A stretch of 64,000 nucleotides of DNA, taken from NCBI GenBank assembly GCA_964270895.1, contig OZ185443.1. The stretch is one strand, 5' to 3'. The notes under the pieces are model-generated. The model was given only the letters and a program-made list of their open reading frames with translations. It was not told the DNA's origin and searched no databases. Position numbers and translations under genes: made by a program. Source of the DNA: Podarcis filfolensis (lineage: Eukaryota). Position 1 is the stretch's first letter. Each line of letters opens with the position of its first letter. Shown here in pieces: positions 1 through 40,875 of this stretch.

Positions 1-351
1 CTTTCAGTGGGGAAAGCTTTTGCTTTTATATTTTCGTATTTCCACCCAGCCTCTCAAAAATATTTTACCCATCTCTTGTGGTTTCTTCTTCCATTTTCTC
101 TTCCATGGCCATGTACATTCACTTTTTTGTCCTGTTTCTTCTGATATCCCCCCTTTTCCATTCCCGGTTTGTCTGTTGTTGATTATGTTATATATTAGCC
201 TTTTACCTCTCTAATTTCCTTCAACATCTCCTCAGTTCCTTTTCCCTTAGCGGAGGGAGACATTTCCCTCCTCTCAACTGCCAACCTCTCTGTCTCCCCG
301 GCCCCATTGTCTCAGCATGGAAGGAGTTATGGGTGCTGGCATGAGTATATT
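1..351. repeat. Third (partial) copy of the local duplicated unit also found at ~6890-7250 and ~9320-9665
   Basis: Near-identical text in three places, e.g. CCCCCTTTTCCATTCCCGGTTTGTCTGTTGTTGATTATGTTATATATTAGCCTTTTACCTC. Ends at GGGTGCTGGCATG(A/G)GTATATT, where it fuses to the RAPGEF2 duplicate. Confidence 0.9.
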
Positions 352-1559
352 TTTCCCAAGTAGTTTATAATATTGCAACTGAAGCTAAGTTTAAGCCACT
401 AAAGAATGAATTTTAAAAGATCTTGGGGGTTTTAATCTCAGTTCAAAATGACACCTGCATTTGCAGCATCACAAACGTATGTTCTTGTATACAATTTTGT
501 GAAGTAAAACTAAAAGTGCATTATATTATTTTATATTATATTTAGCAACTGACAAATGCAGTCACTCATAAACAAAAACACTGAGATTATGCACCATAAA
601 ATTGTAGGTCTTTTCTGAACTGCAATGTTCAAGCAGTATTTGTGAGTTGAAGAATCATCAAAAGATTATGGTAGCAGTGGTATGGCTTTCCTGTCTTATC
701 AAAAGTGTTCTCAGATCTATTACAACATTGCTTTCCAAACACTGTTGGAGTAACAGACACTTCTATAAACAAGGACCATTTTTAGTGCAAAGATGTGGCT
801 ATGATGATCAGTAAGTGTTTGTTACTGCCAGATGGAAGTATTGTAATGAGTAATACAGTAAAGTCTATTCAGAAACTGCAGCTGTAAAATGCTGTGAGTC
901 ATTCCCTTAGTATACTAGCAAAAGAAGCATGTTATTACCAGAGGTTTAGAAGAGACATAACCAGCTCATTTGGGTGCACTGGTGATATTGATTATAAAAG
1001 CCCTCTGTTGTCTGAAACATAGATATCTGACTTTCAGCCTTGCTTTCCATAGTTAGTTGAAATGGTCAAGAAAAATGTCTGAATTCAATGATCCTAACAT
1101 TAAATGTTTTAGAGCTGCAAACAATTTTTTACAGAGGCCACCAACTGTCAAATCTACTTTTCTCTCTCAGATGCCCTAATCTTACTGCCCTTTACAAGAA
1201 GTATTAGTTTCCCTTTTCATTAATTATTTTTATCTGGAGTACTGTAGCCTGGTGCATCACAGCTACATTTCCACCTACTCTGAAATTTAAGTGCAGATTA
1301 GGATATATTTGAGGTCTGCTGGGGATTGCTTTCCTTCAAGTGGCTTCCCTGTAAGACTGAGATGGAATAGTTGACATGATTGCACTTGTAGGTGTGTGCA
1401 CCACTTTATATCTTAATACAGGGTGATTAATAATGAAATATACCGTTTCAACACACCATAAAAAAGAAGAATGTAATATATATTACCTGTAACAGAATTG
1501 CAGGGGAATGTTTAAAGTTTTTTTAGAAACAGTCACAGATGTTCTATATGTGCACCTAT

Positions 1560-1868
1560 TGTCACACATCGAACCGGTAATCCTTATCTGCTGAAACATG
1601 ACTCACCCTACGTGCTGATTTTCCCGGGCTTCGTTGAATGATGGTGCAAACACTACTGGCTTCTTCCGATACACACGGTTGTCCAGGACTTCTAAGTTTG
1701 CACAATCAGCCTGTAGTTTCACATTTTTTATGCCAATTGTAGATACATTTTCTGCTTGGAGGTTTTTCCCCCGAATCACAACCAAAAATGCCATCACACA
1801 ACAGTTACAGATTCCATTTTGCTCAATTCAAGAACACGAAACACCTTCTCCACTGCAGACGCAGCCAT
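1560..1868 (-). pseudogene. Degraded N-terminal (HTH DNA-binding) part of a Tc1/mariner transposase
   Basis: MAASAVEKVFRVLELSKMESVTVV*...(frameshift)GEKPPSRKCIYNWHKKCETTG*LCKLRSPGQPCVSEE...IQRSPGKSARRVS resembles the recalled N-terminus of DD37D/DD41D-like transposases (WxxxFxxTG...SPGRP...RSPxKS). Contains stops and a frameshift and lies inside the TIR element. Confidence 0.75.
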
Positions 1869-1947
1869 TTTGCCTGACTAGTCACATGAATCGCATGCTA
1901 TCGCCTATGTCACTTCCCTCAGTAGTGGAACACAAACTTTATGAGTA

Positions 1948-2189
1948 CACTGGTACCTCGGGTTAACAACTTAATTCGTTCTGGAGGTCTGTTCTTAACC
2001 TGAAACTGTTCTTAACCTGAGGTACCACTTTAGCTAATGGGGCCTCCCGCTGCCGCTGCGCCACCGCGGCGCGATTTCTGTTCTCATCCTGAAGCAAAGT
2101 TCTTAACCTGAGGTACTATTTCTGGGTTAGCGGAGTCTGTAACCTGAAGCGTATGTAACCTGAAGCGTCTGTAACCCGAGGTACCACTG
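1948..2189. mobile_element. Tc1/mariner (Tigger-like) MITE nested in the 1419-2285 element
   Basis: TIRs CA(C/G)TGGTACCTCGGGTTA / TAACCCGAGGTACCACTG; TA flanks at 1946-47 and 2190-91; internal AACCTGAAG repeats; second copy at 5606-5818. Confidence 0.88.
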
Positions 2190-3130
2190 TACATCTACCT
2201 CACGGTTCGCAGTTATGATCCGTGTCGTTGCCTGTTACTGTCTTACAGCATCTGGAAACTGTATACTTCATTATGAATCACCCTGTATATTAAACCTTTG
2301 CCCAACTAATTTGTAAAGATCCCTCTACCTGAACTGCACATTTCCTCTCAACAAATTCAACTAAGGAAAATCTAAGCTCTAGTAAACATCTTACATAAGG
2401 TTGCAACCTGAAACTTAATGCCAAAATAAAAAAGGCAAGGCAGTAATCTATTCTCTGGTTCAAAATTCCAATCTGGCAAAACACTGAAAAGGCTATCAAA
2501 GCTTGGAATATGACTTTTTCACCATACAGAATAATTGCGAAGGAAATTTTTCATTCTAAGTTCATGATCTGTATTGCCATGAACATCCCCATACTAAAAT
2601 GTTGAATTACAAATCCACTAAACACAACAAGCATTTTTTGTTCCTTCTCTACTCCCCCAAGATCTATGTAACAGCAATTCTGACAGGTTGAGTTCTTTCT
2701 GCTCTGGTACATTCGATTTCCTGAATGCCTCTCCCATCTCCAACACAGTCCAAAGTAGCAAGAAAACTATTGAGACTTTACATTTTCTGAAGTTTCAAGT
2801 ATGAATTGTGGCTTAAGATTATAGCCCAACTTTCTTTAAAGCCCTCAAGGGAGCATTATACGTTAATGTTAAATAAATAGAGTACATAAAACTGATTCAA
2901 AAAGAAACACCACTAAAGAAAAATGCCTAGCAGTGTATACTAGAAGTGATTTTAATGTGCTTGTACCATTTTACTTGGTTGTAAACTGCCTGGTATGTAT
3001 CTTTTTATGACAGGTGGTATATAAATGGTTTACAATAGATAAAACAATAATACTTGTATACAATAATCAACAAATATCATACAATATAGTTACTTCATTT
3101 CTCCTGTCTATAAATAAGCAATACTTTGTA

Positions 3131-3602
3131 TTGTTGTTGTTGTTGTTTAGTCATTTAGTCGTGTCTGACTCTTTGTGACCCCATGGACCAGAGTACGCCA
3201 GGCACTCCTGTCTTCCACTGCCTCCCGCAGTTTGGTCAGACTCATGTTTGTAGCTTCGAGAACACTGTCCAACCATCTCGTCCTCTGTCGTCCCCTTCTT
3301 CTTGTGCCCTCCATCTTTCCCAACATCAGGATCTGTTCCAGGGAGTCTTCTCTTCTCATGAGGTGGCCAAAGTATTGGAGCCTCAGCTTCACGATCTGTC
3401 CTTCCAGTGAGCACTCAGGGCTGATTTCCTTAAGAATGGATACGTTTGATCTTCTTGCAATCCATGGGACTCTCAAGAGTCTCCTCCAGCACCATAATTC
3501 AAAAGCATCAATTCTTCGGCGATCAGCCTTCTTTATGGTCCAGCTCTCACTTCCATACATCACTACTGGGAAAACCATGGCTTTAACTATACGGACCTTT
3601 GT
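3131..3602 (-). mobile_element. 5'-truncated BovB (RTE clade) LINE
   Basis: Uninterrupted RTE C-terminal ORF (KVRIVKAMVFPVVMYGSESWTIKK...WCWRRLLRVPW...LRLQYFGHLMRR...HGVTKSQTRLND*), (CAA)n tail, target duplication ATACTTTGTA, empty site near 35632. Confidence 0.95.
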
Positions 3603-4009
3603 ATACTTTGTATACTTTGTATACTGTTCACTAATACTGAATGTGAAGCTTATTGACCGCATGTGTCTCCTTGTCAGTCTCTTAACTCCACATTTGGAGA
3701 AAATAATTTTCCTGTCTTATTACCTACACCCCAAGAGATATTTATCCAGAAATTCTACCTTGAATTGTTCTACTTAGTTTTGGCTGCTTCTCAACTATTT
3801 TCAGGTTCCAGGGACAACTACATCCATTTCCATTACCCCAGCCCTTTTAACATTGATTTGCATGCCCCCACTATCTGCACAGTGACAATGATAAATAACT
3901 GCTAACTAATAATAATGGTACAAATTTATTGCAAAGTATTTCAGTAGATCAGACTATTTATGTGTCCTAAAAAGAAGAAAAACAGAGTATTTCTCTGTGA
4001 ATTTTCTCA

Positions 4010-4109
4010 GTGTGATTTGCCAACCGCCCACTGCGTCTTGGTTGTCGAACGTTTTGGAAGTCAAACAGTTTTCCAGAACAGATTACGTTCAACAACCGAG
4101 GTTCCACTG
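4010..4109. mobile_element. One-ended Tigger-like MITE remnant
   Basis: Ends in AACCGAGGTTCCACTG followed by TA, the same TIR class as the 1948-2189 MITE; no matching left TIR. Left boundary approximate. Confidence 0.6.
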
Positions 4110-4500
4110 TATTTTAAAAAGAAAGGGGAACAGAAATAACACTAGTATGGCCTTTGTATCCAATAGGATGTGCACACTTTGCTTTTGTGCTTGAATAGCT
4201 GCACCCTCATGGTACAAGCAGCTGTTAGATTTAATTGCAGAAAAGCGAGGGTAATCCAAATGTAGACTTGGAAACTGCACTGTTCTGGGACGTAAATAAA
4301 TGCCACGAATAATTCCGTATTAAAACTGTAGTACTTAACAACAAACACAAGAGGTCTCCTTAACTATGTATTTCAGATGCTGCTTTATCTCCAGTTAGCA
4401 CACCAACACCAAATATATATTCTGCAAGAACTTTTTTTAAAATACTGCACAACATACCATTTGGTAAAATCTTAGAATTACATAAGAACTTGCTGAAGAC

Positions 4501-4870
4501 TAGGGGTGCGTCGAAATTTGGTTCAGTTTGCATTTTGCGATGAAGCTACCTAATTTACCTTTCAAGAAACAATATGTGAACCCAAATACAGCTGTCCTGT
4601 AAAATTCACACTAAGTGTATATTAGGAGACAGTGTACATAAAAATGCACATACCCATGAAAATAACATGCAAAACACCTTATACTGTATCTTGAAAGGAT
4701 GTATATATTAGTCAAAACTGTGTGCAAAATGTATTTATTAGGAGAAATGGACTGAAATACTAATCTTTGTGGGAATGTTAAAAAAAATGCAATCTGATGT
4801 GAAAATATGGTGAACTGAATTTAAGATCCGGAAAATGAGAAAGTTGAAATAGGCAAATTTTCCATCCCTT
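4501..4870. mobile_element. hAT-like MITE (degenerate)
   Basis: Ends TAGGGGTGCGTCGAAATTTG / CAAATTTTCCATCCCTT; candidate 8-bp TSD CTGAAGAC / CTGAATGC (imperfect). Confidence 0.5.
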
Positions 4871-5463
4871 CTGAATGCACATGCCATATGGTTACTATCA
4901 CTTTAAATGAAACAGCAAATACAATATATAGGCTCCCTGTATTAGAGGTAGTTGTGGAAATTTCAGTTCCATCAAGTTTTCCTGCACTAAGATTCTGCAG
5001 TTTTCACTCATCAAATAGACACTTACAGTCTTCAATCAGGTCACCATTTATTTCTTGAAGTTTTAAAGCCATATGTCCGGATTTTGCTGGACATTTGATC
5101 TTACTTGTACTGTTAGGAAAACAGTCTGGTCTAATGGCAATTTACTTTGGAACATCCTGCCTATTGATATCTGGAATGCGCCATTGCTGTACACAGTACA
5201 TACCCTTCTGGGCACCTACTTAGAACATTTTTCTTTAGGCAAGCCTATCCAGGCATGTAGACGTCACATGTGTTTTATCTCTTTATGTCTTGCCTAGAAG
5301 TTTTCTTACAATCAAGAAGTATGTGAATTATATTAGATGAATAAAAATTTCCGCTTGGCCTTCTCTCATCTTTTGCTCCTAGTTTGTCCTATGGGAAGTG
5401 GGGGGGGGCGAGGATATGGTTCGGTTGCTTTCATTTTTCTTTCTACATCTAGCGAGTGGCGCT

Positions 5464-5608
5464 GGGGACGCGGGTGGCGCTGTGGGTTAAAGCACAGAGC
5501 CTAGAGCTTGCCGATCAGAAGGTCGGCGGATCGAATCCCCGTGACGGGGTGAGCTCCCGATGCTCGGTCCCTGCTCCTGCCAACCTAGCAGTTCAAAAGC
5601 ACATCAAA
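5464..5608 (+). mobile_element. Squam1/Sauria SINE, 5' half
   Basis: GGGGACGCGGGTGGCGCTGTGG...GATCAGAAGGTCGGCGGATCGAATCCCCG...AGCAGTTCAAAAGCACATCAAA matches the recalled lacertid Squam1 head and the copy at 40524. Confidence 0.88.
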
Positions 5609-5818
5609 CTGTTCTTAACCTGAAGCACCTGAAACTGTTCTTAACCTGAAGCACCACTTTAGCTAATGGGGCCTCCTGCTGCTGCCACGCCGCCGGAGCA
5701 CGATTTCTGTTCTCATCCTGAAGTAAAGTTCTTAACCTAAGGTACTATTTCTGGGTTAGCGGAGTCTGTAACCTGAAGGGTATGTAACCTGAAGCGTCTG
5801 TAACCCGAGGTACCACTG
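5606..5818. mobile_element. Second copy of the Tigger-like MITE lacking its left TIR
   Basis: Collinear with 1990-2189; right TIR TAACCCGAGGTACCACTG plus TA. Confidence 0.88.
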
Positions 5819-5888
5819 TACATCATCCCACTCACATTACAAGCACAAGAGGTTGATGCTGAACATGACAGCCAGCTCTCACATTTCA

Positions 5889-5943
5889 CAGATTTGTAGA
5901 GTTGGAAGGGACCCTAAGGGTCATCTAGTCCAACCCCCTGCAA
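5889..5943 (-). mobile_element. CR1-type LINE 3' tail fragment
   Basis: GTAGAGTTGGAAGGGACCCTAAGGGTCATCTAGTCCAACCCCCTG, the reverse complement of a typical reptile CR1 3' end; similar fragment at 39678. Confidence 0.7.
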
Positions 5944-6454
5944 TAAAGCAATCTCTACTAAAGCATCGGATTTTTGTATCAGATACGTATTTTACCACAT
6001 AGACCTTGAGAAGCAACAGAAAAATCTGAACAGACAGATGGCAAAGTGTGCTAATTCCACCACATAAGCCCATCTGAAAACATCAGAAAGCTGTGCTTTT
6101 AAATATAGACTGTCAGCATTCCAGCTTTACATAAATATACAACACAGAGAAAAAGGTTGTGTATGTTTTTCTGTATATCACAGCATAACCAATATGAAAG
6201 TTAGCTGAAGCTCAGTCCATTTTTTATAAAGCAAGTTTCCAGGAAGGTACACCTTCAGTTTACTTCCTCCCTCTCCAAAATGGATGACCATAGGCTTGGC
6301 AGTCTGTCATAGCTGCTGCTTTTGTGATATATTCTAGCTTCCCTTTCACCTTCTAAATAAAGGGATGGCTTTGCAGCAAGCCAGCTTCCCGATTCATTCA
6401 CACACTCTTCTAGGCATACTGCTAGGAGACAGTGTCCTAAAGTGACTAAGGCTG

Positions 6455-7935
6455 CAGCCCTATTCCTTCCTAACAGGGAGAAAGCTCCATTATACACACT
6501 GGGACTTACTTCTGAGTATACATGTACAGGATATATGAAAGGTTTTATACTTCACCAGTTGGATTAAAAGGAGCATATAGTATTATTTAGGATTAACTAG
6601 ATCATAAATTATTAAACTGCTTATCCCCAGGCCCACTAAGATGGCTGAACATGACTAAGACCCACCAGTCACAAAATGGTGGTGCAGGGGCAGAAGAAGT
6701 TACAAAATGGTGGCAAGTCAGACTTTGGCACAAGGAGCTGGCAATCACTTGCATGATGTCCTACTGATATCAAATCAATCTTTGGAAATGGCTATTTTTT
6801 ACCTCAGCATTTTCCTTGCAGCAAGGAATCCACTACGTCAGTTTTCCTCGTGCTAAATACAGGCACTTTTTCTGGTGGCATTGGGAAAGCAGATCCAGCT
6901 TTAAGTGCGGAAAGCTTTTGCTTTTATATTTACATATTTCCACCAAGTCTCTCAAAAATATTTTACCCATCTCTTGTGGTTTCTTCTCCCATTTTCTCTT
7001 CCATGGCCATGTACATTCACTTTCTTGTCCTGTTTCTTCTGATATCCCCCCTTTTCCATTCCCGGTTTGTCTGTTGTTGATTATGTTATATATTAGCCTT
7101 TTACCTCACTTTCTAACTTCCTTCAACATCTCAGTTTCTTTTCACTTAGCAGAGGAAGACATTTTCCTCCTCTCCCCTGCCAACTTTGTTTTCCCTGCCC
7201 CGTTATCTCAGCATGCAAGGAGTTTTGGGTGCTGGCATGGGTATATTGAACACATTTAGTGAAGGATTTTGTTTTAAAATAAGCTTCTGTATCATGTATT
7301 TGTACATTAACAGATATTTTAGGCTATATATTTTCTGGTGGGAGTGTTTTCTTGCAGGAGGGGAGCTGACAGGAAAAAAATAAAAATCACCTTTAAGGAC
7401 AATCAAAGATGAAGGAGAAGAATGTTTGGAGGGGCTTTTGACTTTGCAGCAGAGGGATGGGAGGGGGGACGGTTGTGGGGAAAGCATCCATGTTGAAAGA
7501 ATAGTAACTCTGGCCAGAGAATAAGAGATTACATTTACTGCTGGAATATCATCTTGACTGTGAGTCCTGCAAGCCCTGCTCCCTGCCTTCTTCCAACTGT
7601 CCTGGGAATGACTGCAGGTAGAAATGATGAGGCTGCTGAACAGACTCTGGGTGGGGGCATTGCTTAGGGATTTTTTGCAGAGGGGGTGTTATTGTTGCTG
7701 TTATTGATATTAATTTGTGTAGCTTTATTTTGCAGCTTTATTATGATTTATGTGGAAATTGTTCAGTTTGGTTGTGTACTTTTTGATGTTTTGATTATCC
7801 CTTCTGACTACTTTTGCTGTATTTTGAATTGTGCATTTCTTTGCATGGCATAAGCCACCTGAAGCATGGCTATAACTGGAAAGGTGGCATGCAAATAAAA
7901 TGATGTATGTATGTATGTATGTATGTATGTATGTT
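6455..7935. repeat. Local tandem duplication, copy A
   Basis: Collinear with 7955-11315, from CTGCAGCCCTATTCCTTCCTAACAGGGAG to the (TATG)n end. Confidence 0.9.
7905..7932. repeat. (TATG)n microsatellite at the copy A/B junction
   Basis: TGTATGTATGTATGTATGTATGTATGT. Confidence 0.9.
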
Positions 7936-8328
7936 TACTGCTTGGAAACCTATTCCTGCAGCCCTATTCCTTCCTAACAGGGAGAAAATTCTATTATACA
8001 CATTGGGACTTACCGTACTTCTAATTATATATGTACAGGATTGTGCTGTAATGTTAAAAGAAATACAACTGACTGTATTACATTATAAATCCACCCTTCC
8101 TACAAGGATGATGAATGGGTGACAATATTTACAGAAGCAATATATAAACTGTGCTGATCTCTGTAAACAAAAAACAAAAAATACACGTAATAAATACACT
8201 ACATAATTTATCTCAGTAATCCTCAAATTCTGTAGCACAGAACATCTTTAGTACATATAACTGATAACTCTATGTCCACTTTGGCAAAACAAAAAACAAA
8301 AATACCACAACCAAAGCATAAACAAACC

Positions 8329-8464
8329 CATGGACAGGGAACTGCAGTTCTTCCAGATGTTTCTGGACTACAACTCATATCATCCCTGCTCATTGGCCAT
8401 GATGGCTGCGACACGTGAGCGTTGAAGTTCATCAGCATTTTGAGGGCCACAGATCCCCCATTCC
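8329..8464. mobile_element. Common lizard palindromic hAT-type MITE (degenerate)
   Basis: CCAGATGTTTCTGGACTACAACTCATATCATCCCTG...CAGCATTTTGAGGGCCACAGATCCCCCA matches a recalled abundant squamate MITE. Confidence 0.55.
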
Positions 8465-9710
8465 TACTTTAAATTGTTAAAGTAAGAACTTGGCTGTAGA
8501 AGAATTCCCACCACCGCTACCCCCCATAGAAAGATTTAAGGAGATTGCTGGATTTTGACCGTAATAAATTTGTGCAGCCTTTGCAGTTAGAATATCAAAG
8601 TGAAGCACTGCTGTCAAGCACACAATTTCTCATTGGCAGGCTGCAGTGTGTGTATTGATTCAGTCCACCTAACTCCATGCTTTTAAGATACTGACACACT
8701 TCATCTGAAAAGGTGTATTTCACAGCCGAAGGAAAGTGACCTTCATGAACAGTATTTTAAAAACTATAAGGATGCAACTTCAGAAGTGTGCATTCATATG
8801 TTGTTCACGCGCGCACACATATATCTATATTATACATATATGTTATTATCATGCTATTATTACAGAATCAGAAGCAAACTTTGGTTATCGGATGGTACAT
8901 GGAAGTATAATGTATACAGAGTAGGAATTAAAATAAACACAATGTGTAAACTGGTAAAAATATATGAATGAAGCTTTTATGCTTCACTATTTGGATTAAA
9001 AGGAGCAGATAGTATTATTTAGGACTAACTAGAACATAAATTATTAAACTGTTTGCTCCCAGGGCCCACTAAGATGGCTGACAATGACTGAGGCCCAGCC
9101 GTCACAAAATGGTGGTGCAGGGGCAGAAGTTACAAAATGGTGGCAAGGCAGAGTTTGGCACAAGGAGCTGGCAATCTCTTGCATGATTTTCTACTGGTAT
9201 CAAATCAATCTTTGGAAATGGCTATTTTTTTACCTCAGCATTTTCCTTGCAGCAAGGAATCCACCACATCAGTTTTCTTCGTGCTAAATAGTGGCACTTT
9301 TTCTGGTGGCATTGGGAAAGCAGATCCAGCTTTAAGTGGGGAAAGCATTTGCTTTTATATTTCCGTATTTCCACCCAGTCTCTCAAAAATATTTTACGCA
9401 TCTCTTGTGGTTTTTTCTCCCATGGCCAAGTACATTCACTTTTTTGTCCTGTTTCTTCTGATATCCCCCCTTTTCCATTCCCGGTTTGTCTGTTGTTGAT
9501 TATGTTATATATTAGCCTTTTACCTCACTTTCTAACTTCCTTCAACATCTCAGTTTCTTTTCCCTTAGCAGAGGAAGACATTTTCCTCCTCTCGCCTGCC
9601 AACTTTGTTTTCCCTGCCCTGTTATCTCAGCATGCAAGGAGTTTTGGGTGCTGGCATGGGTATATTGAACACATTTAGTGAAGGATTTCATTTAAAAACA
9701 AGCTTTTGTA

Positions 9711-10308
9711 CAGGGTGGATAAAAATCAATGATTTAAATTTTAAAAGATCAGATTTTTTATTTAAATCGGATTTTTTAAAATTTAAATCGGATTTTTAAA
9801 ATAAAATGCTTTTGGAGGAAAAATCTTTCTAAAGATATTTTTCTGTTTAAGTTACAGCATAGTCCAAAGGCTATACTGGAAATACGGATTTGTTTTAAGT
9901 TTTTCATGTGTGCTAAAACTCAGTCTAGGTTTGTTTATTTTTTAAGCTCAACCACATCAGTTAACAAACATGGATACATATGCTATAATATTATTGATTT
10001 AGTTAAATAAATTGTTTAAATTGTTATTAAGGAAACGATTATTTTTCTCCTTCCAATAAAGTACAAATATAAAGTTATTAAACCTCACAATAATTTCATA
10101 ATTATCTGTCTATGTATTTCTAATAGTATAACTCAGTGACTTTTTTATATAAGTGTAAAAACTAATCTGAAAATTTATTATTCCAGAAATGAAACCTTCA
10201 TCTGGTTGTAAATATTAAGATTAAACCACCAAGAATGAGTCTTTCTGTAAAAAAAGTGTGATGTAAATCAAGTCTTACTGACTAGTAATTTAAATCAAAT
10301 CCACCCTG
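9711..10308. mobile_element. hAT-superfamily non-autonomous element
   Basis: TIRs CAGGGTGGAT / ATCCACCCTG; 8-bp TSD CTTTTGTA / CCTTTGTA; single site CTTCTGTA in copy A near 7283. Confidence 0.88.
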
Positions 10309-10615
10309 CCTTTGTATCATGTATTTGTACATTAACAGATATTTCAGGCTATATATTTTCTAGTGGGAGTGTTTTGCTGCAGGAGGGGACTTGACAGGAA
10401 AAAAATTAAAAGCACCTTTAAGGACAATCAAAGATGAGGGAGAAGAATGTTTGGAGGGGATTTTGACCATTGCAGCAGAGGGATGGGGGGGGGGGAGAAA
10501 GCACCCATATTGAAAGAGTAGTTATTCCGGCCAGAGAATAAGGGATTACATTTACTGCTGGAATATCATTTTGACTGTGAGTCGTGGAAGGCCTGCTCCC
10601 TGCCTCCCTGCCTTC

Positions 10616-10901
10616 CTTTCTTTCTTTTTTTAAATAAACATTTTTATTCGATTTTCCAATACATTTATTTTTAAAAAATTCATATACATATTCATATACA
10701 GAGATTCCTCCAAATCTCAGGACTAACCCCCCCACCCCTCCCTGGATCCCCATTTTAAACATTTTAAACTGCATCTTCTTCCAGACTCTAGTATATCAAT
10801 CGATATTTCCCATGGTCATTTTTACACTACAAGTGAAATAAAAATCCTGCCAATGTTTCCATCTGCTTACAGTGGTTTTTATGTAAACATTTTTATTTGA
10901 T
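10616..10901 (-). mobile_element. 5'-truncated L1-like 3' end
   Basis: Flanked by the 12-bp direct repeat CTCCCTGCCTTC (10604-10615, 10902-10913); A-rich tail with AATAAA on the minus strand; absent from copy A. Confidence 0.6.
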
Positions 10902-10980
10902 CTCCCTGCCTTCTTCCAACTGTTGGGGGGGGGCACTGTCTAATGATGAGGCTGCTGAACAGACTCTGGGTGGGGGCATT

Positions 10981-11047
10981 GTTAGCTGCCCTGAGCCCAA
11001 CTTCAGCTGGGGAGGGCCGAATATAAATAAAAGTTTATTTATTTATT
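10981..11047 (+). mobile_element. L2-type 3' tail fragment
   Basis: GCCCTGAGCCCAACTTCAGCTGGGGAGGGCCGAATATAAATAAAAGTTTATT resembles the reverse complement of the L2 tail at 23460-23510; absent from copy A. Confidence 0.7.
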
Positions 11048-12028
11048 ATTGCTTAGGGGTTTTTGCTGAGGGGGTGTTATTGTTGCTGTTATTGATATTA
11101 ATTTGTGCAGTTTTCTTTTGTACCTTTATTATGATTTATGTGGAAATTGTTTGGTTTGGTTTGGTACTTTTTGATGTTTTATTTATCCCTTATGACTACT
11201 TTTGCTGTATTTTGAATTGTGCATTTCTTTTCATGGTGTAAGCCACCTGGAGCATGGCTATTAACCGTGGAACGGTGGCATGCAAGTAAAATGATGTACG
11301 TATGTATGTTTACACTGGCGACTCACAGTAATCCTCTCAAAGTCAAGTTTTAATTAAATGGTAATTCTGTATCTTGGCTTTATCAGCACGGGTGTGTGTG
11401 TCATATGGTATAATGCTTCTTCATTTTTTTTTAATTGGTTCACATAGAAAATTGCCATGTCAGGAAGAAGACTAGGTTTTAACAACTGTATTTCCCTGGC
11501 ACCTGCTTTTCTATTTACAGGGATTTCCATTATTACTGACGAGCACTCAGACATCTGAACCCCCACCTGAAATAGTACTGCTCAGATACAGTTTTATTGA
11601 GAATGGGGCTTAAGTGGCTTTGCAAATCTGTCAACATTGACTGTGAATTGTTGGAAACATAGTTAGGAAAGAAAGGAGCACCAAGCTGAGAAAAGGCAAC
11701 AAAAGGGTTGAAGGCTGCATTCTTCTAGAGTTGGTTTTAAAACAAACATGATGCCAAGGAGCTGAGTCTTAATTAATTAGCATCATTTAGTGAACATTAG
11801 CGTAGCTGTCGTTATATAAGGCCAGGGCTTTACAAGTCTTGGTGAAATGTCATTGTATAAGCTAAAGATCTGCTGGTGTCGCTATACTAGCTCAGGACAG
11901 CCTCTAGTAGTGGCACAGAGACTAGCAAGCACAGCTGCACATGCAGTTCTCTCCCATATATATGAATAGCAAAGCCTAAGAAAACATCCAAGACAGGACA
12001 AAACAATACGGAGATCATTAACATTATA

Positions 12029-12090: not shown

Positions 12091-12238
12091 NNNNNNNNNN
12101 NNNNNNNNNNNNNNNNNNNNNNNNNNNNNNNNNNNNNNNNNNNNNNNNNNNNNNNNNNNNNNNNNNNNNNNNNNNNNNNNNNNNNNNNNNNNNNNNNNNN
12201 NNNNNNNNNNNNNNNNNNNNNNNNNNNNNNNNNNNNNN
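12091..12238. other. Assembly gap or masked run (148 N) inside the 3'UTR
   Basis: Run of N. Confidence 0.99.
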
Positions 12239-13559: not shown

Positions 13560-14745
13560 CAGCGGCAGGGCATGACCCGGTGGTGCCTGGGGTGGGTGGG
13601 AGCGTGCCACACAATGGCAAAAGGGCACGCTGTGGGGTGGGGTATGCCATCGGAATGACTGCGTCCTTCTCGGCCGTCCTTCCTCGGATCTTAATCACAA
13701 TCAGAGGCGTAGAGTGAGGGGTGCTGGGGGGGCGTCGCCCCAGGTGCAATCTTGTGAGGGGGGTGCTGGGTGCCAGAGCTGCTGCATCCTTCTCAGCTGG
13801 AGGGCAATAACTTCACAGTATTTCACATGCAGGGGAGAGATGTGGCAGCTTCATGCACCAGCCTCACACTGCTTTTGTGGGGATTGTGGGACCTGTAGGG
13901 CGCTCAAGCCACTGCGTCCCCCTCAGCCACCCTTTGGCTAGAGGGCACCCAGAAGAGATGTGGCAGCTTGGGTACCCTGCAAAAGCAGCGAGAAGCCGCA
14001 AAAGTAGTGTGGAGCCGGCGCATGGAGCCGCCACATCTCTCCCTTGCATGTGAAATACTGTGAAGAAATTGTCCTGGCACTTTTCAAACTGTGTTGCTTG
14101 AAATGCACAGTGCAGCGTTTTCCCCAGCTACCGCTGTTGCCGTCTTCCACATCACAGTATCATTCATATTACAGCTGTATGAGAGGACTAAAAAATTCTA
14201 AATAGGCCAAGGCTTTACAACCGAGCGAGGGTATCTCTTCTCCATCATTGAACCAGCCAGAAATACATGTCAGCATTTTTCTTAGTTGGGAATCAAAAAC
14301 GTGTACTTCCAACATCTACACATCACAATGAATAACTGACTGTACTTCCCCAATGCCTGGAAGCATTTAAAACCTTCCTCAGATCTTAATCACGATTACA
14401 GGCATAGGTTGGGGTGTGCTGGGGGGGACATCGACCCGAGTGCAGTCTTGGGAGGGGGGCACAGGGTGCCAGAGCTGCTGAATCCTTCACAGTTGGAGAG
14501 ATGCAGCAGTGCCGTGTGCCGGCCCCACACTGCTTTTGAGGGCAGCGCAGGACCTGCAGGGTGCCCAAGCCACCACATCTCTTCTGGGCGCCCTTTAGCT
14601 GGAGGGTGGCTGAGGGGAACACTGAGGGTCCCATGTTGCCTGCAAAAGCAGCACGGGGCCAGCGCATAAAGCCGCCACACTCCTCTGGCTGAGAAGGAAG
14701 CAGCAGCTCCGGTGCCCTCAGCAGCCCCCACCCCACTATACCTCT
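13560..14745. mobile_element. Composite hAT-like insertion in the 3'UTR: MITE copies plus inverted host DNA
   Basis: Starts CAGCGGC and ends CTATACCTCTG; candidate 8-bp TSD ATTGTGAT (13552-59) / AATGTGAT (14747-54). Palindromic MITE at ~14395-14745, second rearranged copy at ~13702-14040, inverted host copy at 14041-14393. Confidence 0.75.
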
Positions 14746-15131
14746 GAATGTGATTAAGATCTGAGGAAGGTTTTAAAAAATGCTTCCAGGCATTTGAGAA
14801 GTGCAGTCAGTTATTCATTGTGATGCGTAGATGTTGGAAGTTAGAATGATACTGTGATGTGGCAGACAGCAACAGTGGTAGCTGGGAAACTGCTGCAATG
14901 TGCATTTCAAGCAACACGGTTTGAAAAGAGCCAGGGCAATTTCTTCACAGTATTTCACATGCAAGGGAAGAAGAGTGCGGGAGGAAGGGGGAGAAGCCCC
15001 ATGCTGCTTTAAGGCAGGGAAGGAGGCAAACAGGTCCACCATCCTTTAGAGTTCCAAGGCTCCTATACTAGGGGCGTCGTCTTGTGCTCTCCTTTAAGTT
15101 GGCTCACGCAGGATCCAGAAAGCCCCAGTTC

Positions 15132-18860: not shown

Positions 18861-19397
18861 CATTTATATCCTGAAATCCTATAGCAAGATTTATTCAAAT
18901 CCTTTCATCTCCTGCTCTCCAACACCAGCATCTTCACCTTTTTATATCCCTAGACAAGTTTAAATCTGCATTAGTGATTAAGGCATAGAATAAAATTGTG
19001 CTAAACAACTGCATGGAGGTATAGGGCAGAGCACACTAGGGCTATATTACTAACATACACAGAGAGAGAAAACTGTACCCCCATATTATAAGACATTGGC
19101 CTAAGCATATTAACAAACTAGAAAGGAAAAGAAAACAAGAGTTTATGTTAATGACTGAAATGTGGGCAGTTCTGAGGCAAGATAAAAAAAATTAACTAAA
19201 AAATAACAATGGAATATCTGCAGGAGGAAGCATCACTTCAGCACAAAAGGCTTTACTGAAAAAGCAAAACACAAGTTAAGACTATGAGCTGGCTATATGT
19301 TTTGCTTAAAAAAAGATTAAGAAAAAATATTTGTAAAATAAATTCATATTTATAGCAAATATGTAGGATACTTTGTGGTAGACAAAGGTAAACTTAC

Positions 19398-19957
19398 CAA
19401 TAAGACCCTTTGTATTACTTGTTGACACAGCTATATGAGCTGGCATGGGAACTGGCTTTGAATCCTCTGCTGTCATAGATGTTATGCTACTGGTTTCAGC
19501 TTCAATTGACACATCCTTCCCACCCCTCCGTTTTATGGTACCTGTATCACCTTCAGAGTCCTCTCCCCAGTAGCCTGTGGAGGATGCCCAGCTTGCTCTG
19601 GACTGTGCTTGATCAAGGCCCTCCCTACCTTGACTCTGCCTGCCATACTTTGTGCCATGATCGGAGAACATCATCGGGTCCATGTGGCTGCCTGAGGCCC
19701 ACAGTCCTGCCCCATCGCCTGAACTATCGAAATGAGCATGTCCAAAAGGAAGAATCTCCCAACTTCGCTGGTGCTGTATTGTCTGTATGTTGTCATGGGA
19801 ACCACTTGAACAAGAAGTCCAGCTGCCACGGCCACTATCCGCTGCATCAAGTGATGCTCGATCTCCCTGATCCTGTGACAGCTCCTCAGTGCTAGGAGAA
19901 GAAAGCATGGTTGCCCCAGCATACAAGCCTCTGTTCTCTGACAGTGGTGGGTAGTAG
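19398..19957 (-). CDS. RAPGEF2: RAPGEF2 exon: (G)[12 protein letters not shown]...DSGRGSWTS...STSNTKGLI
   Basis: 560 nt, AG/GT, phase 2-1; contains the DSGRGS beta-TrCP-type degron (19822-19839). Confidence 0.97.
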
Positions 19958-21486
19958 CTAGAAGAACACAGGAACAAAATAATTAATAGGCATAAAGCAA
20001 CAATGTTGCCACTAGCAATTAGAATATCAAACCACAGTAACAATTTGCACAAAGCATTTTGTTCAATTTGTAGTACAGATCAGTTAACTCTAAAGACGTC
20101 TGTGCTCAAATTCACATGCTTCAGTAGCTGCCAAATATACGTCTAATGAAATTGTTGTGATACTTTGTGCACCAACTGAACACTAGATCAGAAATGTCAT
20201 TTGTGTGTTTTTCAAAGATTTTTCAAATTGTGAATCTGGTAAGAGTATTAGGAGCATGCATTTTCCACATTCTTCCCCTAATATCTCTTGGAGAGGCAGG
20301 TATATCATCTAATACTTATCAAAATAATTGGGGAAAAGATTTAGGACATTAGTCACTAAACACTATCTGGAATTGGATATGACAAAAATGTCCCTCAACA
20401 AAAAATCAGTGCACATTTAAAAGAAACTTTTTACAAGTTCATTTTTCATTGGTGCTTAGAGGTCTCTTGGTGTCTTAAATGGTGAATTCAGCCCTTTAAT
20501 ATTTAGTGAAAGAATTTACATTGTATTCATTCTGTGGTAGTTTAAACACAACTTTTCCCAAATATTGATTCCTTAATTTTGAGAATTTTATAAATGTAGT
20601 CCCCAGCACTAACATTTTCTAGATTTCCAATTTAACATACTAATTTGCACTGCCACCTACTCTCTCTTTTCCCTTATTGACAATAATTTACTTTTCTTTG
20701 TTCTTCTTGATGAAGTGCTTCTCTAGTCCCACTTGCTGATTCAAGTTGTATTTATTATCTTCATTATTCTGTTTTTATATTTGATAAGTTTGAGTGTTTG
20801 TCCTTTCCAGTATCTGAACTAAATATTCCTTCCATCTGTTATTTATTTTATTAGCTATTGTTTTAATCAGTTTAAAGTAGTTTAAATGAGGTCCCTCGTT
20901 GATATTTTGTTAATTTTTGCCTAAGCAGTAGTGTGAGAAACTTGAATTCCATGATTTTACTTGAAATATCTGGGTGCATATCAGCTAGGATTTAAAACAG
21001 ATTTCCAATTAAAATAAGTGTCTCTTCTGTCCTGTAAGTTGCAGCTTCTTTTAAACTAATAAATGTAACCAAGATTTCTCTCAAGCATTCACTAAACAAC
21101 AACTCAAAAAACTTGGGACCATTCTATTTTTAGATCCTATTCTAAAAGACACCTCAGTCCAAGCCGATCGAAGTTTGTCCAAATGTACATAATTACACAA
21201 GCGTTCTTTTAAGAAGACTACTAGGTTTCCCCTCTCCATTCCTTCTGGAAGACCCCTACATTTTAAAATAAATAACAGGATATTTTGGAAAGATCGGGCC
21301 AAGAAAGCATTATGCATTATGGGACACAGGTTTGCAGTGTTTTGCTTTTCCTTTAAAGGCAGAGTCACTCAAGTGATGCCTTGTAACAGAATACATGTTC
21401 CTAAAATCTGCTCATGAGAGAAAAAGCATCTACAGCTCTAGAGTAGGCTTTTGATAAATGTAATTACACTGACATGTACTACCTAC

Positions 21487-28170: not shown

Positions 28171-28368
28171 GGGAAAGGGCTGTAGCTCAGTGGTAGATCA
28201 TCTGCTTTGCATGCAGAAAGCCCCAGGTTCAATTCTTGGCCTTGACAGGCAGGGTTGGGAAAAGAGCCCTGCCTAAAATACTGGACAGCCACTGCTGGTC
28301 AGCATAGGAAGTTCTAAGCTTGATAGACCAATGGTCTGACTCAGTATAAGGCAGCCTCCTATGTGTTC
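28171..28368 (+). mobile_element. Squam3-type tRNA-derived SINE
   Basis: A box (TAGCTCAGTGG) and B-box-like (GGTTCAATTC) head, plus tail GACCAATGGTCTGACTCAGTATAAGGCAGC(C)TCCTATG. Confidence 0.85.
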
Positions 28369-29113: not shown

Positions 29114-29235
29114 CTACATTGCCAAAAGAATGATAGGAAATAACTATAGTACTCTGCAATTGGTCAGTGAAAGTAAAAACACAGGTGTTGCCATCACCAA
29201 AGAGTCAATACAGAAAAAACACTTGCAACATTTAC

Positions 29236-29447
29236 CTTCATGGAGGAACGTAAGGTCCTTTTTGATTACAGGGAACAATGGAATAATAGGAGGCTGTAGA
29301 TTTTGGCTATTCAGGACATTGCGATATTTTGCCATGTTCCTAGATGGATCAAATAAATCCTGAAGATCTTGAAACAATTTTTCATATTTGCTTGGAAGTT
29401 TTTCCCAAGTAGTTCGTAGTCTTGCAACTGGAGCTAAGTTTAGGCCA
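29236..29447 (-). CDS. RAPGEF2: RAPGEF2 exon (CDC25): (S)[17 protein letters not shown]...[19 protein letters not shown]
   Basis: 212 nt, AG/GT, phase 2-1. Confidence 0.97.
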
Positions 29448-32322
29448 CTAAAGAATGAATTTTAAAAGATGTTGGGGGTTTTAATCTCTATTCAAAATGA
29501 CACCTGCATTTGCAGCATCACAAACATATGTTCCTGTATACAATCTTCTGAAGTAAAACTAAATGCATATCATATCATATTTAGCAACGGACAAATGTAG
29601 ACACTGGTAAACAAAAACACTGCTTTCAGAGATTATGCACCATAAAATTGTAGGTCTTTTCTGAACTGCAATGTTCAAGCAGTATTTGTGAGTTGAAGAA
29701 TCATCAAAAGATTATGGTAGCAGTGGTATTTCCTGTCTTACCAAAAGTGTTCTCTGATCTATTACAACATTGCTTTCCAAACACTGTTGGAGCAACAGAC
29801 ACTTCTATAAACAAGGACCATTTTTAGTGCAAAGATGTGGCTATGATGATCAGTAAGTGTTTGTTACTGCCAGATGGAAGTATTGTAATGAGTAATACAG
29901 TAAAGTCTATTCAGAAACTGCAGCTGTAAAATGCTGTGAGTCATTCCCTTAGTATACTAGCAAAAGAAGCATGTTATTACCAGAGGTTTAGAAGAGACAT
30001 AACCAGCTCATTTGGATGCACTGGTGATATTGATTATAAAAGCCCTCTGTTGTCCGAGACATAGATATCTGACATTCAGCCTTGCTTTCCATAGTCAGTT
30101 GAAATGGTCAACAAAAATGTCTGAATTCAGTGATCCTAACGTTAAATGTTTTAGAGCTGCAAACAATTTTTTACAGAGGCCACCAACTGTCAAATCTACT
30201 TTCCTCTCTCAGATGCCCTAATCTTGCTGCCCTTCACAACAAGTATTAGTTTCACTTTTCATTAATTATTTTTATCTGGAGCACTGGTGCCTGAGATTAT
30301 TGACCACCTTTGATCCCCAAATCAAGTTTCATCAAGTATATTAGCAGAATAAGTTACAGTAATTTAACACAGAGGCATGAAATTTAACAAGGCATGAAAG
30401 TGACCAGTCTCAAATGCAGGCAGACAATGTAACTTATTTTACTTAATTTGAGTTGGTTAAAAGAATTCCTGGCTTGGAACTCTATCAATAATGCCCCCAA
30501 ATCACAGTGTTCCATGCCCAGGCTTTTCTAAATTGATGCTAAATATAACTTTCCGAAATCACTGTCACCCATAGTGAAAAGGCAAAGGAGCATCAGCACT
30601 GTGAGAAAAGTGGGCATCCTGAGTGTACTGATTAAAAATCCCTATCTTGCCTATGTTCACGTATCAGACTACAGGAAGGTTTAGTAGAAATGGCATGAAG
30701 TTGTGGAGTGAGGAGTGCTTGAGAGAGGTATTCGGTCTGTGAGGGGGATTCTGTCAGGAGGGTTCGTTCAGACAAGTGGTAGAGCTGAGGAGAGCCAAGA
30801 ACTCTCAGTATATGCTCTAAGGTTCTGAATTGCAGAACACTGTTAAAATAGAAAAGGCACAGTCTCCCACGGTGTTTACAGGAAAAAGGGTCCTCAGAAG
30901 GAATACTCTGACATGAAAGGGCAGTAGTGATTCCCAGGCCAAAGAGGATTTGGGGGTCTGTAAGGAAACAGTCCAGTTAAAATGCTAAATTCCTGAAGTG
31001 TGTGTGGAAAAGTCTGATCTATGAAAGATGTGTAAAAGAAAGTAACCTTAAGCCTGAACAGCATACAGCCTATAACTTGAAACAGTATACGTTTTAATAA
31101 AAAGCAACAGCACTGTGCCATGAATAATCTCACTGTTTGATATATTTCTGTGGAAGAAAAAGAACCAAAAACTCCTTGTTTACATCTGTTATAATAAAGT
31201 TTGTTTGCAACCTGTTTTCCCCAAAGAAAAACCCACTGTCGCTCGTGATTCATTCTCTATTGGGGGAATTCACCTGAGGGAAGGGAAACTGAGGGCTGGC
31301 ACAGCGGTGCCAGGGAGGGAAGAGTGCTGTTGCGTTGTCCCAGAAGTCCCTCCACATCGCCTGCTAGTTTCAAATGGTAATATGTCAAGACCAATGCTAT
31401 CAATACTTGCTGAGATTGCTAATAAATGCAACAAAGCAAAGGTTTCCTTACCATGGAAGCCTTCAAGTACAGTCTAGGGATTGTAATTGCATTCAAAAGC
31501 CGAATAGCAGGCTCACATGAGGCCTAAACAACAACCAAATGTGCTTCATACAAAGTGACAATCTGTTTTGAAACGACCCTTTCAAAAGGAAGGTAACCGG
31601 AAAATTCAGAAGTGTACTTTTTGTGGGGGTAGGAAGGAGGAGAACCAAAGATTTAAGGCTGCCTTGTCTAACAATTAGCTTCTACTGCATTAAGTTAAAA
31701 ACCTGTGTAACCTATAACTGGGATTTTGAATGCCAACATGCAAACCTTTTAAATGATACTAAATGAACTGGATTCATACAGGACTGTGTGCAGTCTTTCA
31801 CACATAAAACATACTCCATGGTTGCATACTAAGTGGAAACAGAGATAGATAAATGACTTCTTTTGTAATTTTGCTTTTTCCAAGTCTGTTCCAAAGGATA
31901 TTTTGATTTCTAGAGATAACAAATGCTTATAAAAATGACAAACACAACAAAGACTAATACATTTATAATGACACACGTGATCATGGAGTAGAGTCTACTT
32001 TCATCAGATATATCATTATGATGTTAGCAATGACAAGCTTGCAATGCTAATTTAAACAGCTTTTCATGGAAGAATCCTCTAGCCTTTCAACCAGTCTTGC
32101 TCTTTTTGGATTAGGATTTTGTCTAAAGCTGCTGCTGAGGACTGTTAAGTTAATGAAATATTACTATTGTAGTATTAAATTACTAATTCATAAAACAGTA
32201 AAATGTACACATAGTATCTTTCTTAAAATTTAGTATCATCATTATGAAGCATCTATTTACACTTTATTTCTTATAAATTGTATGCAAAATCATTGGGGGG
32301 GGGGTGATCTAGTCTTGTTTAC

Positions 32323-32706
32323 CTTATTATTGCAAACATGGAGTTGAAGTTCTTGCATTCCCTGCAGTGCAATGCTATCTTAATGAAGTGCTTAATTATC
32401 TTCATCCTTTTCAGCTGGTTGGTTTCTCGCAGAATCTCAGATGCCACCCAAAAGGTTTCTTGGTTTATTACTTCTTCAAACTTTTTCAAGTTAGTACAGC
32501 TAGACTTAGATTTCAGTTTAAACAAGTCATCTATGTATTCTGTAGGTTCAATGTTACGGAACAGTTCAAAGTTACGCATAGAGAGTTGGGTTGCCACCTC
32601 AACAGTACTGAGTTGCAATAAAGAAATTTGACTCTCTCTCAGCAATTCCTGAGCATCTTCATCTGAACACAAGGTTTCTGTCTCCATGTTGTTCTTCAGA
32701 TAATAC
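32323..32706 (-). CDS. RAPGEF2: RAPGEF2 exon (CDC25 start): (R)[12 protein letters not shown]...NFNSMFAII
   Basis: 384 nt, AG/GT, phase 2-2. Confidence 0.97.
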
Positions 32707-32861
32707 CTGGGAGAGGGGGGAAGAGGGAATAAAGTTTTCTAGAAATGAAAACACTAATAGTAATGGAAAGCAAAGGTAGCTTGCTTAGAATTTAAAAATC
32801 AGTATATTTAAGAAGTACATTCAATTATATTCTGAAATGGCAGATGATGTACGAGTCTCAC

Positions 32862-33102
32862 CTTCCACTAAGCTGTATTCTGTCAGCAAGCTTGGAAAGT
32901 TGATCTGGAAGCCTCCTCTGCTTGATTACTCCCTCTGGAGTGACTGAAACTTCACATAAAGAATATGCATCTGGGGTGGTGGTTAGAGCAAATTCTCGGA
33001 TTGCTTGAATAACCACTTCCTTTGCAGTTGTGTCCTTACTGATCATAATGTAGCGGCTTTGTTGGTCTGCCTTAAAAACCCTCAGAACCTGGTCTGGTAA
33101 AT
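32862..33102 (-). CDS. RAPGEF2: RAPGEF2 exon (RA domain): (D)[25 protein letters not shown]...RIQLSG
   Basis: 241 nt, AG/GT, phase 1-2. Confidence 0.97.
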
Positions 33103-38328: not shown

Positions 38329-38434
38329 CTAGAAAGAGGAACAAAAGGATTGAATCCTGGCAATTCATAACGATGAAGAGTCTCCACTACAACTATTTGC
38401 ATTCCAAGAACCTGATGAAATTTAATTTACATAC

Positions 38435-38638
38435 CTGATCACCACGTTTCAAGCCTGCTTCAGTGGCTTTGCTACCTGAATCAACACTGTCAACAAAGAT
38501 TCCAAATCCCTTTTCAGATCCTCCCAATAATAAGAAAGGCAAAGGGGCTTCCCGAGATGGCTTTGTTAATGTTATCATTCTTCGTTTAGCTTTAGCAGCA
38601 CATGCAATATTTAACAGCCTCAGATGTCCACCCATTTT
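38435..38638 (-). CDS. RAPGEF2: RAPGEF2 exon (PDZ N-half): [10 protein letters not shown]...[14 protein letters not shown]...GLKRGDQ
   Basis: 204 nt, AG/GT, phase 0-0. Confidence 0.97.
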
Positions 38639-38727
38639 CTGTAGGGAGAGAATCCAGAGCCATTTGTTAGATGTAAAGTCACCTCAGTGTAGGACAGCAA
38701 GTCTCTTACTTTGCCAATAATCCATAC

Positions 38728-38835
38728 CTCTCTTTCTAAATTGTTCTCAAATTCTTCCAGAAAACGAGTCATTGCAGAATCTCCCTCAAAATCATTGAAG
38801 TGATTGTTCACCCACAACAATACTACCCGTGTAAC
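38728..38835 (-). CDS. RAPGEF2: RAPGEF2 exon (REM): [36 protein letters not shown]
   Basis: 108 nt, AG/GT, phase 0-0; followed by an 89-nt intron. Confidence 0.97.
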
Positions 38836-39677
38836 CTGAAAGAAACAATATAAATTCTTTATATAAATGCAGTTTTAAAAACCCAAGGAAAACTATTTTT
38901 CAGCTGCTTTCTTATTTTAGACATTTCCCCAACACCATATACTTCAGTATCTGATCTAGTGACATTTTTTTTAAATTTCTAGAAGTCCACCAGGTTAAAA
39001 AAAAGAAAAAGCAAGAAACTGGGTTTTAAACATAAAGCTTCACATTTGTACAAAATCCTTCACGTACTTCTTTTCAGAGAAGAGAAACCTGTTATCCTAC
39101 ATTTTTACCACAGGACTTCTATGCAAATAAGAAACACTACCATATCTCTTCATGAAACTATAGTGTTGAAATGGTAGCAATTTAAAAAGAATTGCTTCTG
39201 AAGCAATAGGCTCCAAACAGTTAACTGTCTTACAAAAATAACAGATTAAAAAATAAATTTGGGTTACTTTTTCTTCTTTTTTAAAAAGGCCTAAAGGCCA
39301 TTTCCAATTTTGCATGTTTCTGTAATATGCTTTTTAGCTATGCTACCTTAGTTCAAAAGGAAAACTTTGCTCCTGCTGTGTCAGCAAACCGAGTCACTAT
39401 CAGAAGCCACTATTCATTATATAGATTTTAATAACATGGAATCAATACAACTACCACTTCTATGCACTAACAAAACACAAAATTCAATGCAGTCTTTCGT
39501 TACAATGAGTTTAAAGAATCCATAAATAGACCTTGACAGGAACCAAAATTCCGACAATGTGCTGTTGAGAACCCGTTACCCTTCAAGTTTCTAAAATCCC
39601 TGTTCTGCTACAATGCCACAAATTTGAAAGTAACTGCTTGAATTCTTAGACCTAACATGAATTGAGGCATCCAAACA

Positions 39678-39750
39678 CAGAATTCTAGAATTGTAGAGTT
39701 GGAAGGGACCCCAAGGGTCATCTAGTCCAGGTACCAGCAATGCAGGAATA
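39678..39750 (-). mobile_element. CR1-type LINE 3' tail fragment
   Basis: AGAATTCTAGAATTGTAGAGTTGGAAGGGACCCCAAGGGTCATCTAGTCCA. Confidence 0.7.
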
Positions 39751-40523: not shown

Positions 40524-40875
40524 CGCTGTGGTCTAAACCACTGAGCCTAGGGCTTGCTGATCGGAAGGTCAGCGGTTTGAATCCCTGCGACGGGGTGAGC
40601 TCCTGTTGCTCGGTCCCAGCTCCTGCCAGCCTAGCAGTTCAAAAGCACATCAAAGTGCAAATAGATAAATAGGTACCACTCCAGCGGGAAGGTAAACGGC
40701 GTTTCTGTGCGCTGCTCTGGTTTCGCCATTAGCAGCTTAGTCATGCTGGTCACATGACCCGGAAAAACTGTCTGTGGACAAACATCAGCTCCCTTGGCCA
40801 GTAAAGCGAGATGAGCGCTGCAGCCCCAGAGTCGTTTGCGACTGGACTTAACTGTCAGGGGTCCTTTACCTTTTT
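40524..40875 (+). mobile_element. Near full-length Squam1/Sauria SINE
   Basis: Head GCTGTGGTCTAAACCACTGAGCC..., core GTGCAAATAGATAAATAGGTACC, tail GACTGGACTTAACTGTCAGGGGTCCTTTACCTTT. Confidence 0.92.

Follow-up and report, generated by a model that had tools for sequence, protein, structure and literature searches.

Many young gene duplicates are already incomplete in structure when they form, and template switching is known to produce complex duplications whose junctions show microhomology. The present study concerns a partial copy of the gene RAPGEF2 at positions 350-4003 of a 64,000-nt stretch of contig OZ185443.1 (assembly GCA_964270895.1) from the lizard Podarcis filfolensis; the whole stretch was analysed, is hereafter referred to as the window and also carries the parent gene. 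Its match to the introns of the parent, its low copy number and the presence of its junctions in independent data identify it as a partial duplicate of RAPGEF2 made at the DNA level. Like other partial duplicates and unprocessed pseudogene fragments, it retains introns, is found close to the parent gene in the same orientation, has a low copy number and has both decayed neutrally and gained transposons; it differs from them in its extreme reduction to 49 nt of coding sequence and would not be annotated even as a pseudogene. It also resembles the duplication-normal-duplication (DUP-normal-DUP) rearrangements of human genomic disorders, associated with fork stalling and template switching (FoSTeS) or microhomology-mediated break-induced replication (MMBIR), in its collinear pieces, its template within 35 kb, its 2-3-nt microhomology and its lack of filler. 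Unlike those new and pathogenic rearrangements, however, the copy is old and common to several lizard species, all its pieces are direct, and any one-step origin is something that we infer.

Two further classes of gene copies are less similar. Processed pseudogenes are likewise non-functional copies of a part of a gene, but the present copy is almost all intron, has neither a poly(A) tail nor a flanking target-site duplication and lies beside its parent. Captures by Pack-MULE or Helitron elements also stitch together non-contiguous pieces of one gene, whereas this composite is single-copy and has no element termini around it, the transposons within it being later insertions. No RAPGEF2 duplicate in lizards was found described in literature searches. 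The feature is nevertheless of an ordinary kind, another partial-duplicate relic with no sign of function, and it is very probably the old, neutral remnant of one local duplication.

A self-BLAST search of the window aligned the copy with 29399-30293 and 34610-36070, collinearly and without change of strand (Table 1), the copy lying downstream of the minus-strand RAPGEF2 in the orientation of the gene, in agreement with the collinear same-strand blocks reported in a preliminary description of this DNA. The left breakpoint, at parental position 29399, cuts a RasGEF exon of the minus strand (29447-29236), where the copy is joined to A'. A' reproduces the middle of a ~1.5-kb unit from the 3' flank of the gene, and its junction with the exon bears out the mid-exon fusion noted before. 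A' begins at the edge of the window and may continue to the left of it. At the other end, the last block reaches approximately 4003/36070 when the alignment is extended by eye, which places the right boundary about 100 nt into the intron past the exon ending at 36165. Altogether, about 2.3 kb of paralogous sequence is retained out of a parental span of at least 29 kb. The coding sequence consists of the exon stub 398-350 alone, the splice acceptor of which is intact and in which six of the 49 positions are changed, including a change of CGA to the stop codon TAA.

The segments A', block 1 and blocks 2-4 abut directly without filler, and the parental spans skipped between them amount to about 22 kb (A' to block 1) and 4.3 kb (block 1 to block 2). 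The absence of the latter from the copy, with the RA and first RasGEF (CDC25) exons that it holds, had been noticed earlier, and Pfam indeed places both exons within it; because this segment carries ancestral exons, it is missing from or was lost by the copy and was not gained by the parent. About 2 nt (TT) are shared at the junction of A' and block 1 (350/351). The TGC previously seen at the junction of blocks 1 and 2 (1251-1253) is shared in one alignment, while another gives 1 nt. Block 4' has a 55-nt gap at 3642/3643 with AAT at its flanks, which corresponds to the deletion of about 55 bp proposed at 3640.

The coordinates of the four blocks given in the preliminary description also hold, but two insertions separating them had been missed. 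Between blocks 2 and 3 lies an 867-bp non-autonomous DNA transposon with terminal inverted repeats (TIRs), which the parent lacks at 34778/34779 and within which a very high-copy miniature inverted-repeat transposable element (MITE) is nested. A 480-bp, 5'-truncated 3' fragment of a long interspersed nuclear element (LINE) separates blocks 3 and 4; its target duplication corresponds to parental 35632-35642, and it shows a simple-repeat tail at the left end and an open reading frame (ORF) resembling the C-terminal part of reverse transcriptase. A repeat search also returned a 9-nt repeat at 3597-3625. Pfam gave no match for the ORFs of either insertion, and the LINE fragment is presumably RTE/BovB-like. 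In contigs derived from sequencing reads, the word depth rises to about 10^6 both across 1940-2193, with loose contig ends at 2191-2193, and over the LINE fragment, where loose ends at 3602 run on into the full element. Both insertions postdate the duplication.

The stretch 1-4500 is present in the sequencing runs of six organisms from nine studies, and contigs from four short-read runs were aligned to 1-5000. The junction of A' and block 1 is bridged in organisms A (180-471, with no differences), B (1-545) and F (210-471), the last being the most diverged holder. One contig of organism B (547-1531) spans the junction of blocks 1 and 2 together with the left end of the TIR element, which is also crossed in organism A (1306-1512), and the right end of the copy is bridged in organism A (3788-4082) and in organism B (3574-4066), the contig of the latter crossing the right end of the LINE and the 55-nt gap as well. 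These three junction-bridging organisms come from three studies, and contigs are interrupted at the two high-copy insertions alone. An assembly chimera, against which long reads had been proposed as a check, is thus excluded at the level of the junctions by contigs from several organisms. The 22-kb junction is already present in organism F, the 4.3-kb junction was bridged in organism B only, and the rearrangement predates the splits among the organisms that hold it. The possibility that the copy is an assembly artefact, through chimeric joining or through false duplication of a haplotype, is practically negligible, since independent contigs of other runs and organisms bridge its junctions, since it differs from the parent by 5-9%, far more than haplotypes do, and since it carries private transposon insertions.

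The depth of the duplicated blocks is about 1-2x that of single-copy contigs, as against about 10^6 over the two transposons; A' is low-copy, and block 3' is low-copy in organisms A, B and D. The blocks are therefore not interspersed repeats. In organism F almost no contig depth was observed over 2339-3006, within block 3', for which low coverage is an alternative cause, and a contig of the same organism has 90 unaligned letters that directly precede 3612; this organism may lack block 3' or the LINE insertion or carry a different version of either.

Counting substitutions only, the divergence of the copy from the parent is 4.8% for block 1, 4.8% for block 2, 8.7% for block 3 and 7.7% for block 4 (6.7% when the blocks are pooled), and A' differs by 7.3% and 7.5% from its two counterparts A1 and A2 in the 3' flank of the gene. 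Between species, the copy has diverged by 2.7% in organism D and 3.3% in organism F, compared with 2.1% and 1.5%, respectively, for the adjacent flank; it changes at least as fast as the flank and the relic is thus unconstrained. If the parental intron and the copy evolve at similar rates, the duplication is roughly 2-2.5x older than the splits from organisms D and F. The copy is without a promoter and without usable coding capacity. The ORFs that cross the two key junctions are only 34-43 amino acids long.

Table 1. Features of the partial RAPGEF2 copy, its parent and the neighbouring tandem units, in window coordinates; the identities of the blocks include gaps.
Feature	Position	Strand	Particulars
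A'	1-351		matches 6899-7247 (90.1%) and 9330-9666 (87.3%), self-BLAST
Block 1'	350-1251	-	29399-30293, 93.3%; intron, splice acceptor and 49 nt of RasGEF exon
Block 2'	1253-1418	-	34610-34779, 92.9%; intron upstream of RA exon
TIR DNA transposon, 867 bp	1419-2285		TA target duplication; TIRs of ~34-51 nt
Nested MITE, ~242 bp	~1948-2189		own 21-nt TIRs, TA flanks
Block 3'	2286-3131	-	34778-35642, 89.4%; intron
LINE 3' fragment, 480 bp	3132-3611	-	11-nt target-site duplication 3121-3131 / 3612-3622
Block 4', first part	3612-3642	-	35632-35662, 100%; intron
Block 4', second part	3640-3979	-	35715-36051, 92.7%; intron
Parental segment of block 1	29399-30293	-	
Parent-only 4.3 kb	30294-34609	-	RA exon and first RasGEF exon
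Parental segment of blocks 2-4	34610-36070	-	intron between exon ending at 36165 and RA exon
RasGEF positions 93-166	29147-29461	-	Pfam, parental exon
First RasGEF exon (RasGEF positions 1-93)	within 32322-32738	-	Pfam, E=1.8e-25
RA exon	within 32861-33169	-	Pfam, E=3.7e-13
PDZ	38396-38683	-	Pfam on window ORFs
RasGEF_N (REM)	38623-38874	-	Pfam on window ORFs
Unit 1	6452-7918		~1.5-kb tandem unit; contains A1 (6899-7247)
Unit 2	7956-11309		second copy of ~1.5-kb unit with later insertions; contains A2 (9330-9666)
Segment in unit 2, 920 bp	8042-8959		ambiguous origin
TIR element in unit 2	~9711-10312		~8-nt target duplication
Retroelement-like insert in unit 2	~10606-10901		~10-nt target duplication
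Piece in unit 2, ~63 nt	10986-11047		matches 23512-23441, inverted

The tandem units 3' of RAPGEF2 provide a comparison of similar age within the same window. The two units are 6-9% diverged from each other, but only 3.6% in the part matching A', and a three-way alignment places A' as the outgroup of the pair A1 and A2, with 18 unique changes against five and five. Since the remainder of the A1 and A2 units is 6-9% diverged, all these duplications are broadly similar in age. Unrelated sequence of 2.45 kb lies between A' and unit 1, and A' is, therefore, not simply one more repeat of the tandem array. Of the four large differences between units 1 and 2, at least three are transposon insertions with target-site duplications, the fourth (920 bp) being ambiguous. 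Copy against parent and unit 1 against unit 2 together give 3.7 kb of aligned paralogues of similar age, in which the largest clear gap not due to a transposon is the one of 55 nt.

The copy very probably goes back to one direct duplication at short range, for which the 3' part of the RAPGEF2 locus served as template. It joins three collinear pieces, namely the 3'-flank unit A, 0.9 kb of intron with the 49-nt exon stub and 1.46 kb from the intron that precedes the RA exon; both large gaps would have been created at the duplication itself by replication-based template switching of the DUP-normal-DUP type, in a FoSTeS/MMBIR-like manner. The relic then drifted neutrally, with the gain of the TIR transposon and its MITE and of the truncated LINE, the 55-nt deletion, small indels and the stop in the exon stub. 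The locus is most simply explained by a single event with a template spanning at least 29 kb, because the parental order and strand are kept, the segments abut and all of them are low-copy. As to the gaps, we regard the chances that they arose with the duplication by template switching as evenly balanced. Junctions with a few nucleotides of microhomology and no long homology, which are expected of template switching, are found at both joins. Further, deletions of 4.3 and 22 kb would be outliers in size where similar-age alignments contain no clear deletion larger than 55 nt, and a lean towards a one-step origin also follows from the presence of the 22-kb junction in the deepest holder and from another short templated patch from RAPGEF2 that sits in the 3' untranslated region (UTR) of the gene, where 14166-14251 matches 24897-24821 inverted (self-BLAST).

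The principal competitor, distinctly less probable but of real weight, is a tandem duplication of about 32 kb (~4004-36070), the promoter-less left copy of which would subsequently have lost about 22 kb and 4.3 kb by two independent microhomology-mediated deletions in the course of neutral decay. A copy that was once complete would equally explain the order and orientation of A', block 1 and blocks 2-4 and their direct abutment, end-joining deletions typically leave 2-3 nt of microhomology at their junctions, a deletion of 55 nt with the same type of junction certainly occurred in the copy, and simple tandem duplications are, as a matter of general knowledge, commoner than complex ones; the possible absence of 2339-3006 in organism F also hints at ongoing loss. 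On the other hand, no intermediate was seen, even the most diverged holder tested having the 22-kb junction, paralogues of similar age in the window differ mostly by transposon insertions, and the loss of more than 80% of 32 kb in two hits, with a remainder that is nearly gap-free, would be unusual for neutral decay. Several considerations count against a one-step origin of the gaps. It leads to the same end product as a tandem duplication followed by two deletions, and the product by itself does not tell the two apart; there is no inverted segment or filler at the copy, both of which are frequent in template switching; deletions of about 1 kb do occur here, if the near-zero depth of organism F over 2339-3006 reflects a real loss; the argument from the rarity of large deletions combines a small internal control with rates from other vertebrates; and the sequence seen starts at A', the DNA to the left of it being outside the window. 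Thus, from the earlier proposal of a tandem duplication of >25 kb that was later eroded, the direct, local and intron-containing duplicate stands, most simply with a single origin on its long template, while later erosion and one-step template switching are alike compatible with what is left.

All explanations other than these two are unlikely even when taken together. The blocks might instead have arrived one by one, through small duplications or templated insertions that were independent and of different dates, and they do differ in divergence between 4.8% (blocks 1-2) and 7.7-8.7% (blocks 3-4), a heterogeneity (4.8% against 8.7%; chi-square p=0.009) that also tells against one event. The preliminary description had suggested a comparison of divergences per block as a check on this point. 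Mismatch density, however, is just as patchy inside single blocks, ranging per 100 nt from 0 to 10 within block 1 (p=0.0065) and from 2 to 14 within block 3 (p=0.018), so that the heterogeneity neither marks the boundaries of the blocks nor indicates independent events; patchy gene conversion or local variation in rate accounts for the difference between blocks equally well, and with the segments directly abutting in the parental strand and order, separate events are improbable. Gene conversion might underlie the low-divergence patch at about 650-950, although changes that are shared and derived in organisms D and F would give the same picture. An RNA gene preserved in the intron does not account for such patches: when the whole window was scanned with Rfam at gathering thresholds, no RNA family matched the copy or the parental blocks, the sole hit being at 28182-28240, and ARAGORN returned no hit over 1-12000.

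The locus had also been read as a snapshot of a dosage-sensitive duplicate being silenced, in which the duplicate of RAPGEF2 would have been harmful and selection would have favoured deletions that stripped it of exons. Nearly all of the exon sequence is indeed gone while intron pieces persist, and the two very large gaps exceed what neutral decay usually produces. This part of the earlier proposal is nonetheless unsupported and very improbable, because a promoter-less 3' half-gene without the 5' exons, downstream of an intact gene, could not raise the protein dose, because a relic that is 6.7% diverged, present in six organisms and host to two later insertions is old and not in progress, and because what remains evolves without constraint. 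Capture by a mobile element (Pack-MULE, Helitron-like or LINE transduction) or a retrocopy is still less credible. The copy does contain two transposons, but these interrupt it instead of flanking it, each with its own target duplication; an inverted-repeat search found no inverted repeats or target duplications that bracket 350-4003, the only terminal inverted repeats being those of the internal 867-bp element and of the nested MITE; the copy is low-copy and, being mostly intron, did not come from a spliced RNA.

If the one-step origin is extended further, one event with several template switches, the templated patch in the 3'UTR and an inverted self-copy in the same 3'UTR would together make the 3' end of RAPGEF2 a recurrent hotspot of template switching in this lizard lineage, which we consider a speculative and rather unlikely generalisation. 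Inverted as well as direct self-matches were observed in the 3'UTR region 13678-14968.

The copy carries little biological weight, as it is an ordinary neutral scar of local duplication. It does call for care in annotation, since the exon stub at 350-398 is dead but keeps its splice acceptor intact. The junctions and the two transposon insertions are clean rare-genomic-change markers among related species, and the shared junctions could date a clade if the one-step template-switching reading is true. The region is, in addition, a worked case in which transposon insertion and not large deletion lies behind most of the large differences between paralogues.

The parent gene lies on the minus strand, its coding exons within the window spanning 16647-47214 as judged from stop-free stretches and Pfam matches. 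The exons were searched individually and not as a joined coding model. The domains follow the order REM, PDZ, RA and RasGEF, succeeded by a long C-terminal region, and a 257-amino-acid exon ORF (19309-20079) shows 83-89% identity to proteins named RAPGEF2 or RAPGEF2-like and 36% to a RAPGEF6-like protein, the names being those given by the source records. The domain order and these identities assign the parent to RAPGEF2 and not to its paralogue RAPGEF6. In searches of solved structures, the RA and PDZ exons returned no RAPGEF2 entry and the RasGEF exon matched RAPGEF4, CDC25 and SOS; for the large C-terminal exon, the ESM Atlas gave no usable match.

Some minor features of the window were also recorded. 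Just to the right of the end of the copy, 4009-4175 is moderately repeated, with a word depth of about 450-3800 against about 10-40 nearby. Farther into the right flank, 5478-5611 matches 40524-40657 (87%) and 5890-5932 matches 39687-39729 (95%), both on the same strand; the matched sequences lie in RAPGEF2 introns outside the duplicated span and are mutually non-collinear, and the pair in the flank stands beside a second copy of the MITE (5627-5824). These two matches are probably repeat fragments. The single Rfam hit in the window is a tRNA match (39.4 bits) at 28182-28240 on the plus strand, within a RAPGEF2 intron, and is probably the tRNA-derived head of a short interspersed nuclear element; beside it, 28258-28364 pairs inverted with 56302-56196 at 76%. 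Runs of N occupy 12091-12238 and 44687-44865, and an intronic minisatellite at 45722-46108 has a period of about 80 nt, with about 4-5 copies of 84-91% identity.

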